64,000 nt of DNA from Ramazzottius varieornatus (Eukaryota; Animalia; Tardigrada), in NCBI GenBank assembly GCA_001949185.1, contig BDGG01000009.1, positions 1,291,624 to 1,355,623 of the forward strand, given 5' to 3'. Of this stretch, positions 41,709 to 52,600 are shown piece after piece (positions within the stretch are counted from its first letter, which is position 1; each line of letters opens with the position of its first letter). The notes below the pieces were generated by a model. That model did no database searches and was not told the origin of the DNA. It was given only the letters and a program-made list of their open reading frames with translations. The translations under genes were made by a program, and so were the position numbers.

Positions 41709-42475
41709 ATGACGGGGAGGGATGGGCGAAGCCCCAAGGAGGATCCGCTGCAGTTGGATCGGCTCCTTGTGGAGCGTGTCAAGCATTATGAGCCGGACGA
41801 CCAACTTGTGGCGCGAGAGTTCAACCGCCAGCAATGCATGAGGGGTACGCCGACTTGCAAGCTTTGATACCATGATACTTGACAAGTGAGCAAGTGAGCA
41901 CATTCAAGCTTACCAACAAGAAGCTTACCAACAAGAAGCTTACCATAAGCACGAGGAAGTCTTCTTCCTTCACTGCGTACTATGGCTTATTGCAGATGTG
42001 GCCATCACCAGGAAGATCATGTCGGATCACGATCGCATGGATGACCATGAACCACCAGGTAACCTATCGTCTTGCCATGTGCTGTCTACTGTGAGATAGA
42101 TGGGCTAATGTACAGTGCTGCATATCTGTGTTGACATAGAGGACTTCATGCGGCAACTGAAGATTCTGCAACAGCCTCCTCATGAGCGATACGATCTGCC
42201 CCTGACCAGTGCCCAGGAATATGGCTTCTACCAGGCCACTTCCGCGGTGAGATTAGCTAACATGGCACTTATCGTCTGCGAATGGCATAGACCACGGCAG
42301 CATTCTTCCGCTATCACCTCTGACCTGCTCTCTTTTCTGTCACTTCCTACAGGTTACCAACGACCGCAGGGATATTCGCTTCAACTTTCCCAAGCTTCAC
42401 ACCGAAGTTACTGAGATTCCCGATCTCTTCACACGCGACAAGAACTATGAGAAGATGTTGAAGCATCCAGGATAG
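41709..42475 (+). CDS. CFAP144: Cilia/flagella-associated FAM183/CFAP144-like protein
   Basis: Four exons: MTGRDGRSPKEDPLQLDRLLVE...; VAITRKIMSDHD (cf. ITRKPMSWHD); PPHERYDLPLTSAQEYGF (cf. KKYPEPQTESQEIGW); DRRDIRFNFPKLHTEVTE; stop at 42473-42475. Confidence 0.72.
41906..41945 (+). repeat. Intronic 15-bp tandem repeat (2.7 copies)
   Basis: aagcttaccaacaag aagcttaccaacaag aagcttacca. Confidence 0.85.
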
Positions 42476-45693: not shown

Positions 45694-46800
45694 TCACTTG
45701 ATGTAGGTTTGCAGCAGCTTCAGGACGTTTTCGTACACTTGTTCCACATCGCGATTGCCGTCGATCTAAAAATGAAGGTCTGTTGACTCTGTTCCTCATG
45801 CAATATCCAGGTTTGGCTTGCTAATTAAGTGTCCGTTCCTACTCTGGCTATAAACTGTTGTATCTGCAGGTCTCTTAACATAGGCTGGGTGTACTTGACG
45901 TAGTATTGTATTCTTTTGTGGACAATGTCCGGCTTGTCTTCTGGTCGGGTGCCATTCTTACTGCGCATCGCTGTTCGGTCTGCCAGGACGGTATCCGGGC
46001 ATTCAATGACGATAACTAGAGTGGCTTTTCCAAACTGCAAAGCGCACTCGCACATACAACGCTTATTGTCCGAAAAGTCCAGTTGACAAAGGTGGCCTTT
46101 GCTACTTACTGATGGTCAACTTACATCGGCTTCCCAGGCGGTCTTCTGTTCGGGATCTCTGGGGTAGCCGTGTACTAGGAAAGGTTCGCCCTGTTCCAGG
46201 CTTCGGTAGATGTTCTCTCGCATCACTTCGTGGGCATCCATCTATGCGATAAAAAGATCTGGAGAACCCACCAATACCTCAGAGGAGGAACAAGAGGCAC
46301 GCTCACCGACTCGCAGAGGTTGCCAGCTTCGATATTCATTTTACATCGTTTGGCTCGAGGTGTCGGGTCCCTGTTATCGCAGGAGGCCGCTTCTTGCCGA
46401 AGTAGCTCACCCATCGACAGATGAACATAACCAAGACGTTGAGCTACCAGCTTGCAGACTTCCGCCTTCCCTGCCGAAGGTCCGCCTGCAAAAACCTTCG
46501 TATTAATTATAAAGTAGGCCACAGAAAGTTTCGGTAAGCAATCACATCTCCTTCACATGTCAACCGGAAGTTCGGTGCATGGCCGGCTTGATGTGACTGC
46601 ACGTGATGCCACAAATGACGAGCATGTTTGCTGTCCCTACCAAATACTAGAACGAAAGGGAGTCCAGCCTTTTGTATGGCAGCGGCTTCCGGTGTTCTGT
46701 TCTACGAGCATTCAAACGTCAACGCCAACATGGTACGGAGGCCCAGACGGAATGTAAAGTGGGTTACGGCTCTGCCCACCTGGTTCCAGGTCCGAAACAT
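45694..46800 (-). CDS. Adenylate/UMP-CMP kinase family protein (AK1-like), divergent
   Basis: Six exons: MFRTWNQ|..LPFVLVF|GGPSAGKAEVC..GYVHLSMGELLRQE; FLVHGYPR; GTRPEDKPDIVHKRIQYY; IDGNRDVEQVYENV..TYIK*. Confidence 0.85.
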
Positions 46801-47036: not shown

Positions 47037-47692
47037 CTAATCAGAAAGGGCTGCCATTGCGAAAAACCTGAATTCTTCCCAGTCAATCTCTGCGTCACCG
47101 TTGACATCGTACTCTTTGAAGATCCTCAAAATCTGGTTTTCTATAAAAGGAGGAAGCGTTAGACAGCAGCGAAGAAAGAGCGACATGTACCATGTGTCGC
47201 AACGAGTCTAACCTTCGAGATTCCATAGAAAGCCAACGTCGGTGAATTCCTTTGCCGAAATGGATCCAGAGAAATCTTCGTCCATCAAGGTGAAGCACAT
47301 TTTGGCGTGGCGCAGAATAAACTTCTTTTCCAGCTTGTTATAGGCAGCGACCATCAGGCAGACTAGGACGTAGAACTCTTCGAAGATAATAAAGCCCCGA
47401 CAGCCTTTGTCCAGCATATCGAAGACCCGAATGATGCGGCGGTCGGTCAGGTCCGTTACATGCTTCATAAACTGCAAAGCATCTCAATAGATACGATGAC
47501 ATGATTTGCGACTGCGGATAAATGTGCGAAGCCTACTTCATAGAAAATGGCATCGTTCCATTTTCCGTCGGTATGGATGTCCAAAAGATCGTAAAGTTCA
47601 TGTAGCAACTGGGTTTGGCGTGCATTGAGCCAAAGTTGGGCGCGGTCGAGATGCAGACTCTTGAGGAACTCGGACGTCAAGTTCAGAGGCAT
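47037..47692 (-). CDS. EFCAB9: EF-hand calcium-binding domain protein 9 (CatSper-associated) orthologue
   Basis: Spliced (introns 47472-47536, 47141-47212): MPLNLTSEFLKSLHLDRAQLWLNARQTQLLHELYDLLDIHTDGKWNDAIFYEFMKHVTDLTDRRIIRVFDMLDKGCRGFIIFEEFYVLVCLMVAAYNKLEKKFILRHAKMCFTLMDEDFSGSISAKEF..FKEYDVNGDAEIDWEEFRFF. Collinear with recalled vertebrate EFCAB9 (FLWYLYLDK..LNDVLFYHFLHHVTDL..VFDMLDW..FYMLVCMLLA..FMYRHSRPVFDLLD). Confidence 0.85.
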
Positions 47693-48506
47693 TCCACTAC
47701 TCGGCTTCGCCGCTTCGCCAGTCTGCGTAACAAGCAAATGACACTTTTGTAGATACGCTGTAACTTCGAAGGTTCAAAAGCGTTGCAAGTTACTATAACT
47801 CTGAGCTGCTAGGATACCTGCCTGATAGCTACCGGATGACGGTGGTGGCTTCCGCTACCCCATTGCAACTCACAGCGGCGCACGACTGCACTTCCGGGCT
47901 CCTGAGTTTCGGGATGGCGCTTCCTGCAGCACACTCATTATATTATAGAGCTATTTCGATTTCAGTAATACATGTGCCGCTTTCTAAAGCACTTACTGCC
48001 ATCAGAATTGTCACCTAAATGAATTTGCTCTACGCCCGAACCAATTTCGCACTGGAACTGGGCGGAAGTAGACAGTGGCGCCATTCTACGTGTCGTGTCA
48101 CGTACCGTACCCGGAGTGCGGACTGAAAGTCTGAGAATGTTCTGGCAAAAGTCCAGTTAGAGATCTGATCAGCCCGAATTTATACGTTGAAGATGGCGAT
48201 AATGATCGACACGGATCACAAGGCTTCTGCAGTTCCTGCCAGCTAGGCCGACCACTCTTTACATAATATGGAAAATTAAAGCCTCAGCTCGGCCAGCTTG
48301 CCAAGAAGCGTTTGCTGAACTCCATTAGCGTTGGTTGATCGAGGTGAAACGTTCTCCCCTCGTGGTGCACATCTTGAGCCCGAAGGAGCATCTTTCTCGG
48401 GAAAGAAGGGCCCAAGGTTGTTAACCACCCACTTGCACGATAATCGTAGTGCCCTTTGATTGCAGCGTACTGTGGAATGTGGACTGTGATCGAAGAGGAG
48501 TAGACT

Positions 48507-49147
48507 ATGGAACCAGTCTGGCCCTCAAAGGTGAGTACGGAAGACGACGATGTTCCTCCTTCTGGTCGACCTCGACTGATGCGTCGCACTTCTTCACTGT
48601 TGGACTGCATGAAGTACAGCATGTCCATGGCTCACGAAGTTCCTCTCGACAATCTCCGCAAGAAATATTCTTCCGAAGGTGGGTGCTCTTCTGTTGACTT
48701 GTACTTGACGACATTGTCTGATCGATCTATTAATATAACCTATAATTGATAAACTATGCGCCAGCAGACTCGAAAGTGGGTGGGTGGGAGCTCGGCGCGG
48801 GAAAATTTGAAAAAGTTTGTAACACACTGGGTTTCGGTTTCAGAAGCATGGAAAACAGGAGGTCAAGTTCCGGCTGCAAGATTGTCGCGGAAAGCATCCT
48901 TTGCTGAAGGCGTCGAAGATGCTTCCTCGGTGGACTCTGAACTTGCTTCCAGATTTCAACAGCTAACTCGCATGCGCAATGCCGAATTCCGAAGAACGCG
49001 CTATGATAGCGCTCCAGCTTCCATTGTGAGTACAAAGTGCAGACAAATCAGAGATTGTATGAACTTGGACCCACACAGCATAAATTAAATCAGCTGTGGC
49101 GACAGTTGTCGGTTCTTGAAGTAGGGGAGGCTACGTCTATCCCGTAA
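48507..49147 (+). CDS. Small orphan protein (~135 aa, 3 exons) rich in basophilic kinase motifs
   Basis: Exons 48507-48678, 48844-49025 and 49094-49147 join in frame via GT-AG introns: MEPVWPSK..RLMRRTSSLLD..RKKYSSE|EAWK..LSRKASF..FRRTRYDSAPASI|LWRQLSVLE..IP*. Confidence 0.6.
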
Positions 49148-49660: not shown

Positions 49661-52600
49661 ATGGGAGACGCCTCCATGGATCAAGGTTCATTCGATAACG
49701 TCGACGGACTACTTTCTCGGGCTGGAACCCTGCCCTATGTCCCTGTACTGGCCCACTGGTTCTTTATTCGCAAGGACAACAGCAAGGAGACATGGGTGCC
49801 CTTCACTCTTCACGATAGCAAGGAGCTGGAGGAGGGTTGGGATCGCTGTGAGCATTGGCTTTACACATCCCTTTTTGTTACCTAATATAGTTATGAGGCA
49901 GACTCAACAGAGAAACTGCGCTGTTCGAGGAAGAGTGATCTAGTCCATTTCTCTGTGTTGGTTTTAGACAGACGAGGCGAGAAGAGCTTCGCATTCATCC
50001 CGACACAAGGAGGCCGTTACGACGTGGACCTGAAAGGACGCAAGCTGGTGGCAGTCTACTGGGAAGAAGAGCCGTTCCCGGTCCGACGAGCCACCTGGTT
50101 CTGGAAAGTTACGGGTGACTTGTGGATCCCTTATGAAGAGACCATCGCTGATAAGCTCGAGGTAGCCCTTCACCGAGCAATGTACAGGAAGCCGAAGAGC
50201 GTCTATACCCTGTTTCGCTGTTATAAGAAAGCCGTTGATCTGTTAGAATTATAAGTAAGAATATCCGTTTGCTGTTGTGAAATATTTCGGTTATCTGTGC
50301 AGGGCGAATACAAGTTGATATGCAGAACTGGACAATGGCAAAAGCGCATCGACCTGCCGGGAGGAGAAACTATCATTCTGCATTCGGAGACGGCGATGAT
50401 CCACTATGATGCCACCAAGAGCTGGGCCGACGTGGCGGTGGGTCTTCGTTGAGGGCTAAGATGTACCGTTAGGCGGCAGAGAGAGATGTTGGTTTTGGTC
50501 ATTGCAGGAGACACTATACAAAAACCAAAAGATTGTCAAGCGCGGATGGGAGGGAACGTGTACTCCGGACGAGGGAGAGTGGGAACCCGTCGATCACCTC
50601 GTCTTTGTCTCCCACGGGTGGGTTCGTCTTGCCTCAAGTGGTCGCAACCCTTATTGCCTACAATCCGTCTTCTCTTTCTAGAATTGGATCCTACTGTGAC
50701 TTGAGATGGAGAACGCTCAACCAATGTGGTAAGTTGGCTTCTTTGCCGTTCCAACCTGATCGCTGAAGGAAGCATCATTTCGTCCTGTAATCAGTTGGGC
50801 TACTTATAGTTGACGCGTACCGCCTTATGAGCAGGAACCTCCTTCGGGAGCATTTCAACTTTGCCGGCAAGAAAGGCAAGACTTTCCGCGTGGAGTTTAT
50901 ACCCATAAACTGGCACGGCATACTGCACAGTGACAATGTCGAGCTGGAGAACCGCATCAAGCGAATCACCCTCCCAAGCATTCCCATCGTTCGGTGGGTT
51001 CACTTCGCCTCGGTCAACTGCTTTGTACACTTGCCTTTACTCTCGTTTTTCTAGGTATTTCGCCAACGATTATGTGCTGGACATTTTGTTTTATTCTAGT
51101 CCCATGTTTTGTACGGTAAGTAGGCTTTTTTTCAACCTTGTTGAGCTTCCCAGTGTAATTTAAAAGAAGCGCCTTTGTCGCTGCATGAAGGATGTAAATT
51201 GCACGACTGTATCGTTATCTTTGTTTTTGCAGGTGATTGCCAACCACGTTGGCACAGTTATGAACCGCGTCTATTCCCTCTTTCAAAAACGCAACCCAAA
51301 TTTCAAGGGCAGCGTCTCCATTCTTGCTCACAGCTTGGGTAAGTCCGCCAAGACTTACCTACGGTCCTGCGGTACCGCGCGCGGTGAAAGCAATGCCTAA
51401 TACACCTTGCTGAGGCTGGTTATGACTCTTTCAGGTTCGATTGTCATGTTTGACATGTTGTCGCACCAGCCAGATGCCAATCCGGAGAATGAGAGGAAGA
51501 ACCCTATGGAAGCCTCCTTCTCCACCATGTCCAATATTCTGGATGTGCCAGGCGAACTCCGCACCCCCGTCTCAGGCATCAGCCTTGTCGATCCTGATGC
51601 CAGGCCTGGATATAGCCGCCAAGGTAACTTGCATTAGGTTGCCTTGAAATATCCCCCGCTGGTTTCTTCAAGGAGCTTATTGGGACTGTGTATGACGGTA
51701 CTTACCTGGGTCAGGTTCGTCAGCCCAGGTGACGGCGGACTATATAGTTCCTCCCTTCGGTGGAGCTGGTTATCCTTCGGTCAGGTAGTTTACACAGTCA
51801 ACTCTCAAAATATTGTATCATACTGGTTCAAGTCCTCTTCACATGAGGAATTGCTACTTGATAGGTATCCAGTTCTCAAGTTCAAACCGTCGGGATTCTT
51901 CGCCATCGGATCTCCGGTGGGCATGTTCTTAGCTGTACGGGGTGTGACCAACATTGCGGAAGACTACTACCTTCCCACATGTCCGCGAGTCTACAATATC
52001 TTTCACCCGGTAAACCGGGCAGCAACGTTTGTCAAATGCATTCTGCACCAGTGTAGGTAATGCTTGTGTTTCATTGCTAGACGGATCCTGTGGCTTACCG
52101 AATCGAGCCCCTCCTCATTCCCGAGGCCTGTAAAGTTCCGCCATCGATGATCGACCACCATAAAGGACGCAAACGTCTTCATCTCGGTAAGCCTAAGGTT
52201 CATGGTCTATTTCTAGGCTCTAGTATAGCTGGCCTACATAGACTTCTCTGGCTTGTAACGCAGAAGTTCAGAGGAACATTGCTTCGGTGGCCTCGACACT
52301 CAAGACCAGGCTTCTGGATCCTGTGAGGATGCTGTCTAGCATGGTTGGCATTCCCGACTTTGCCAGCAGGTTCCGAGCCAAGGCTCAAGATGAGAAGCAG
52401 GAAGGCGTGAATGCCACCACGCCAACCGAAGAAAAAGTCAGAGGCGAACGAAGCAGTGAGTTTGGTCCAGCGGCACCCACGCCTTCCACCAGCACCAGGA
52501 ACTCCTCGGATGGACAGATGCCCAAGATCAAGTCCTTTGGCATGCTGAATGGGGGTGAACGGATAGACTACGTTCTGCAAGAAGCGCCCTTGGAAAGCCT

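Follow-up and report, generated by a model that had tools for sequence, protein, structure and literature searches.

EFCAB9 has been described in the mouse as the product of a testis-specific gene and as a protein that depends on CatSper1 (10.1101/459487). Its partners there are CATSPER-zeta and ARMH2, the first of which has been described as mammal-specific (10.1101/459487). Across genomes, the gains and losses of EFCAB9 parallel those of the CatSper genes (bioRxiv 10.1101/459487; PMC12638846), and CatSper itself is present in brachiopods and has a heterogeneous, patchy distribution among arthropods (PMC6660944). Our literature search met neither CatSper nor EFCAB9 in any account of tardigrades. 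Ramazzottius varieornatus is a eutardigrade (Ecdysozoa, Panarthropoda) of which only females are known (PMC11191345). We analyzed a stretch of 64,000 nucleotides of its genome (hereafter, the window; positions 1,291,624 to 1,355,623 of contig BDGG01000009.1), which lies on contig C9 of the 55.8 Mb and 200 contigs that we searched. Our conclusion, held with good confidence, is that the gene at 47037-47692 is a single-copy, vertically inherited orthologue of EFCAB9 and part of a retained CatSper set, for which we propose a mouse-like role.

The gene is encoded on the minus strand in three coding exons separated by two introns. Exon 1 (47537..47692, minus strand) opens with the conserved start MPLNL, is 52 codons long and encodes the N-terminal, non-EF segment; it is followed by intron 1 (47472..47536, minus strand), of 65 nt, bounded by GTAGGC...TTGCAG and in phase 0. 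Exon 2 (47213..47471, minus strand; 86 codons plus one base) is the bearer of the EFCAB9 family core and encodes HVTDL, the first EF-hand (EF1), FYVLVC, FILRH and the second EF-hand (EF2). Intron 2 (47141..47212, minus strand; 72 nt, GTTAGA...TTATAG, phase 1) splits a codon as G|AA, which is read as Glu. Exon 3 (47037..47140, minus strand) contributes the remaining two bases, 33 codons including the third EF-hand (EF3), and the TAG stop at 47039-47037, for a product of 172 aa. With the start, the TAG stop and both GT-AG introns in order, the intact 3-exon gene that had been proposed from the letters of the window is borne out. So is its protostome, tardigrade origin: translations of the window exons are identical, in order and with no mismatch, to GAV03437.1 from residues 28, 80 and 167 onward (span 28-199), a record labeled "hypothetical protein RvY_13860 [Ramazzottius varieornatus]".

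The public RvY_13860 model begins further upstream than the gene as we describe it. Its N-terminal extension of 27 aa, which is missing from the 172-aa proteins of Hypsibius and Paramacrobiotus, is derived from an upstream exon (48034..48084, minus strand; 17 codons, MAPLSTSAQFQCEIGSG) and, across a 311-nt intron with GT...AG boundaries (47723..48033, minus strand), from a 5' part of exon 1 (47693..47722, minus strand; TGEAAKPSSG, 10 codons). The upstream exon is not conserved in the orthologues and its coding status is doubtful, and the adjoining 47693..47722 segment is probably 5' UTR. Residues 1-30 have a pLDDT of 52-64 in the AF2 model described below. We took the ATG at 47692, common to the 172-aa orthologues P0002 and P0152, as the likely conserved start codon.

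Several other features of the window lie close to the gene. About 0.5 kb downstream, on the same strand, lies a gene of adenylate-kinase type with two or more exons (45825-46522, minus strand; Pfam ADK, P-loop GGPSAGK), and an exon of FAM183 (CFAP144)/sperm microtubule inner protein type, an axoneme-type gene, lies less than 5 kb away (42115-42411, plus strand). Upstream, two Ser/Arg-rich ORFs of 80 and 110 codons share one frame with a single stop between them (48507-49088, plus strand); they have no Pfam match, are unannotated, and are placed head-to-head with the first exon of the RvY_13860 model. This pair could represent an orphan gene with a bidirectional promoter common to EFCAB9. A WWE-domain ORF (49955-50251, plus strand; E 5e-5) belongs to a separate neighboring gene. 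Scanning the window for X-box (RFX) sites gave 6 one-mismatch matches where 5.5 were expected, none of them near EFCAB9.

Identity was assessed exon by exon, and full-length work relied on the database proteins P0151 (GAV03437.1) and P0152 in place of a model joined by ourselves. Exon 2 alone matched the solved EFCAB9 chains 7eeb_I and 9ubw_I at E 1.8e-15 to 3e-15. Pfam recognized no domain in exon 1, whose top solved-structure match, which is collinear, is to residues 8-50 of mouse/human EFCAB9 and is weak (E 0.27). At full length, residues 9-167 of P0152, the Paramacrobiotus protein (89% identical), aligned with residues 8-166 of EFCAB9 without a gap at E 6.5e-31. A search of 1.84 billion representative proteins with exon 2 found 174 proteins, the named top matches being EFCAB9 of sea star, fishes (loaches), snake and amphioxus; it further matched tardigrade proteins named EFCAB9 as well as protist and chytrid homologues. 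A word-indexed search with P0151 returned 3 matches only. The motifs HVTDL, VFDMLD, FYVLVC and FILRH are present in the gene, together with DEDFSGSISAKE and DVNGDAEIDWEE.

The predicted structure gave a concordant result. An AF2 model built from 36 homologues (pLDDT 87.4) had EFCAB9 as its two best Foldseek matches, 9lwo_A (TM 0.77/0.83, rmsd 1.8 A) and 7eeb_I (TM 0.69/0.78), with an rmsd of 1.8-1.9 A across both EFCAB9 chains. The protein also has the EFCAB9 build, namely three EF-hands (an odd number) within a compact two-lobe fold. The original prediction had asserted an end-to-end alignment with vertebrate EFCAB9 that includes non-EF signature motifs, and the gapless P0152 alignment, the exon 2 E-values and the fold all uphold it; each of the signature motifs it named (HVTDL, VFDMLD, FYxLVC and FxxRH) is found.

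The three EF-hands differ in the state of their Ca2+-binding loops. The EF1 loop, DKGCRGFIIFEE (47376..47411, minus strand; residues 73-84), is degenerate: its positions 3 and 5 are G and R, respectively. All three tardigrade proteins are without oxygen ligands at these two positions and have I or V at position 9; a canonical DxDxSG EF1 loop is found in Strigamia, Asterias, amphioxus and protists. The EF2 loop, DEDFSGSISAKE (47247..47282, minus strand; residues 116-127), is canonical, and its D116, D118 and E127 are invariant in a 12-sequence alignment. The EF3 loop, DVNGDAEIDWEE (47073..47108, minus strand; residues 150-161), is near-canonical, with A at loop position 6. EF2 and EF3 thereby match the expectation of two near-canonical C-terminal loops: both are canonical-like and retain every ligand position, Glu-12 included. 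With ligands complete in EF2 and EF3 and EF1 degenerate, Ca2+ binding by tardigrade EFCAB9 would most likely be by the C-lobe only.

The genome was then considered for the channel with which EFCAB9 co-distributes. Pfam Ion_trans had 105 matches, most of them in four-repeat channels or in Kv-, CNG- and HCN-type genes, and four were single-repeat CatSper-like genes; their subunit assignments reflect best matches, not a tree. The CatSper2-like gene (L023, C1:806899-807824; pore TIDHW) has CatSper2 as its top solved match. For the CatSper1-like gene (L028, C1:7741007-7741990; pore TFDDW), the highest score over a single stretch is that of CatSper1 (86.5 bits), and four-repeat channels total higher only by adding several stretches. 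The CatSper3-like gene (L009, C13:48249-48806; pore TSDSW) is assigned by named orthologues: the nearest proteins that bear a name, at 62% in H. exemplaris, 61% in P. metropolitanus and 40% in a crinoid, are all called "CatSper3", and no CatSper is found among its top 60 solved-structure matches. The CatSper4-like gene (L052, C21, about 83600-84800; pore TQRGW) has CatSper4 as its best single-repeat match for both exons tested, at E 1.8e-8 for the pore exon; a protein atlas look-up of that exon gave generic ion-transport clusters only. The pore genes examined give long open exons.

Three of the four CatSper-like genes thus carry a TxDxW filter (TFDDW, TIDHW and TSDSW), and the CatSper4-like one reads TQRGW (L052:4405-4419, equal to C21:84404-84418, plus strand), where mouse CatSper4 has TQDGW. 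The same pore Arg occurs in P0177, a 68%-identical protein of another tardigrade assembly. Because a second tardigrade has the same Arg, TQRGW is, judging by sequence, a lineage feature and not decay of the strain. The public CatSper4-like model RvY_18774 (P0176, 202 aa) begins inside S5, is without S1-S4 and skips S6; exons for S1-S4 are found just upstream at L052:3609-4203, within a gene region spanning L052:3609-5437, and the annotation appears truncated.

Additional genes of the set were sought by domain. A single open frame on C5 matched CATSPERB_C (PF15149) at E 5.7e-13, a match that passes the cut-off of the family. Exons for a Na/H-exchanger, a voltage-sensor and a cNMP-binding domain follow one another at C4:2806766-2809982 and C9:88788-96911 (plus strand), and exchanger exons followed by voltage-sensor exons are found at C4:2812429-2815494, C2:1151509-1154027 and C17:300095-303721 (plus strand). 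The exchanger/sensor/cNMP order is the domain order of the sperm Na/H exchanger sNHE (SLC9C1). Judged by domain order, up to five loci are of sNHE type, two of them with the cNMP exon; the gene is apparently multi-copy, with a tandem pair on C4. The Pfam CatSper-delta and CatSper-gamma beta-propellers and CatSper-tau (PF15729) gave no match in a six-frame exon-wise search, which is weak for divergent proteins.

EFCAB9, which is single-copy in the R. varieornatus genome, therefore co-occurs there with CatSper1-, 2-, 3- and 4-like genes and CATSPERB_C; as EFCAB9 and CatSper genes are found in one genome, the published co-distribution rule holds here. The original prediction had offered a choice between a retained, under-described CatSper system and an EFCAB9 working independently of CatSper, and had called for a genome search for CATSPER1-4, B and SLC9C1, among other genes. 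That search yielded CatSper1-4-like pores, CATSPERB_C and sNHE-type loci. The four CatSper-like pores together with CATSPERB_C support the retained system, and with CatSper genes present the alternative is not needed.

The most likely mechanism is that of the mouse orthologue. The N-terminal helical segment stands where calmodulin has its first EF-hand, with the three EF-hands after it. EFCAB9 would belong to a subcomplex on the cytosolic side of CatSper, the Ca2+ channel of the flagellum, and would lie under the pore. The C-lobe (EF2 and EF3) would bind entering Ca2+, and the N-lobe, with its degenerate EF1, would probably serve as a docking surface and not as a Ca2+ site. EFCAB9 would link Ca2+ and pH with the gating of the channel and the organization of its arrays, and it would be predicted to be expressed in male germ cells of sexual relatives and to associate with the channel. 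Given an EF1 without two of its Ca2+ ligands and an Arg in the CatSper4-like pore, the sensor and channel may work differently from their mouse counterparts.

In a species known from females alone, the sequenced strain could make use of the gene in sperm only by way of rare or cryptic males, and the one real oddity of the locus is that an all-female species retains the CatSper gene set intact. EFCAB9 shows no decay: its reading frame is free of stops and frameshifts, every splice site is kept, and no substitution is radical. The three tardigrade EFCAB9 proteins are of equal length, 88-90% identical and free of indels; CatSper3 is 63% identical between Hypsibius and Paramacrobiotus. The 27 sites that vary among the three EFCAB9 proteins are chemically mild exchanges, and they fall outside the EF-hand loops except for one I/V in the degenerate EF1 and one K/E in EF2. 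This conservation was mostly earned in sexual ancestors and therefore is no proof of present-day function.

The alternative that deserves the most weight, though it is unlikely, is that this true EFCAB9 has no function in the all-female lineage and is intact because sex was lost recently or males are rare. Terminal branches leading to the two all-female species (0.11 and 0.096) are roughly double the one leading to the sexual P. metropolitanus (0.043). The lineage-specific changes behind them number only 9, 8 and at most 7, however, and the rate difference between all-female and sexual species is not significant. Nor would a relic be expected from the undamaged reading frame and splice sites, the long open exons of the pore genes, or a TQRGW pore that, being common to a second tardigrade, is no strain-specific decay.

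Continuing selection in the present-day animals can be put forward in two forms. The first, which we regard as distinctly unlikely, is that a modified CatSper module, with a dead N-lobe EF-hand and an Arg at the CatSper4 pore, is under selection even in all-female tardigrades; if true, it could point to work outside sperm, to cryptic males or to a channel whose ion selectivity has changed, and bdelloid rotifers, with their EFCAB9-like genes, would offer a parallel. In the second, to which we give a slim chance, EFCAB9, with or without CatSper, is selected for a non-sperm function, such as one in sensory cilia, oocytes or embryos. A mouse EFCAB9 that is testis-specific and CatSper1-dependent argues against such a role, as do the CatSper set that co-occurs here in the manner predicted by the sperm-channel rule and the accumulation of the high conservation mostly in sexual ancestors. 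On its side are an intact gene, highly conserved (88-90%) in two all-female species, R. varieornatus and H. exemplaris, and the EFCAB9-family members of bdelloid rotifers, genus Rotaria. Bdelloid rotifers are known as ancient asexuals.

It is highly improbable that the gene encodes a common EF-hand protein of calmodulin, centrin or NCS type whose likeness to EFCAB9 is superficial. Pfam does report generic EF-hand families only, and exon 3 alone is a generic EF-hand (PF00036, E 9e-7) that many EF-hand proteins match better than EFCAB9 does. Against this, the next-best solved protein for exon 2 is NCS-1 at E 4.9e-4, 11 orders of magnitude behind EFCAB9, and P0152 matches calmodulin at E 1.7e-10, a gap of 20 orders of magnitude; the EFCAB9 alignment is gapless from end to end, non-EF N-terminus included. 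The fold match is likewise specific to EFCAB9, as other EF-hand proteins (calmodulins, centrins and NCS) reach a TM of <=0.53 against the AF2 model. Contamination or horizontal transfer, by which the gene would not be a tardigrade gene at all, has a negligible probability in view of its short spliceosomal introns, its position among animal genes on a 1.9-Mb contig, orthologues at 88-90% identity in two other tardigrade genomes, and a single clade of tardigrade proteins with 100/99 support.

The reading that we prefer, of a vertically inherited EFCAB9 within a retained CatSper set, can be placed against what databases already hold. Orthologues had been named in Hypsibius exemplaris (OQV16549.1, "putative EFCAB9") and Paramacrobiotus metropolitanus (XP_055355702.1, "EFCAB9-like"), and CatSper3 of both species is likewise named. 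EFCAB9-family proteins with the diagnostic motifs are also found in Strigamia maritima (P0018), Gordionus sp. (P0041) and Rotaria spp. (P0062), where they are unnamed or bear generic EF-hand labels. The EFCAB9 family tree was not used for placement: its deep branches were unresolved, and Strigamia and Gordionus were joined by long branches.

These observations temper two statements of the original prediction. That CatSper was lost in arthropods and nematodes is too broad for arthropods, in which its distribution is heterogeneous (PMC6660944) and a centipede has an EFCAB9-family member. The surprise of a tardigrade EFCAB9 is smaller than claimed, relatives having already been named EFCAB9; what stands of it is that the gene is intact in an all-female species. 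No new kind of system is revealed. The documented range of EFCAB9/CatSper now extends to Tardigrada, and with the centipede and nematomorph homologues it shows that the ecdysozoan ancestor already had an EFCAB9/CatSper unit, which insects and nematodes later lost. What becomes of male-only genes once males are gone can also be examined here, by comparing the intact sperm-channel gene set of two all-female tardigrades with that of a culturable sexual relative. The tardigrade-specific degenerate EF1 and CatSper4-like filter Arg, in turn, offer natural variation at positions important for Ca2+ sensing and selectivity.

Comparison with known proteins can be ordered by distance. Calmodulin, centrin, calcineurin B and NCS-1 have EF-hand units in common with the window protein, and their similarity to its C-lobe reaches E 1e-10 to 1e-8; they differ from it in having four EF-hands and no EFCAB9-type N-terminus or motifs, and their TM is about 0.3-0.53. 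Members of the family from Asterias, Branchiostoma, Strigamia, Gordionus, Rotaria, Fabomonas, Chlorokybus and a chytrid are 33-43% identical. These invertebrate and protist proteins share with the window protein the core motifs LHLD, F[YF]xL.C, EKxF..RH[SA][RK], DxDxSG loops and GFLFN; in most of them EF1 is canonical and the C-terminus carries a basic tail, features that the tardigrade proteins are without.

The orthologues of Hypsibius and Paramacrobiotus are the closest, each with 172 aa, no indels and 88-89% identity to the window protein. They begin and end where it does, their EF1 is degenerate in the same way, and they differ from it by mild substitutions only; the R. varieornatus record differs from theirs in its "hypothetical protein" label and in the 27-aa extension from an extra exon. 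Mouse/human EFCAB9 (7EEB chain I, 9LWO chain A and 9UBW chain I) is about 33-34% identical over ~159 gapless residues. Unlike it, the tardigrade protein stops right after EF3 and has no C-terminal tail. The loops also differ: position 12 of EF2 is Glu in the tardigrade and Asn in the mouse, tardigrade EF3 also having Glu-12, and the tardigrade EF1, without ligands 3 and 5, has Glu-12, whereas the mouse EF1 is degenerate otherwise and has Gln-12. Common to the tardigrade and mammalian systems are the odd number of EF-hands, the compact fold, the motifs, and the co-occurrence with CatSper1-4 and CatSper-beta.
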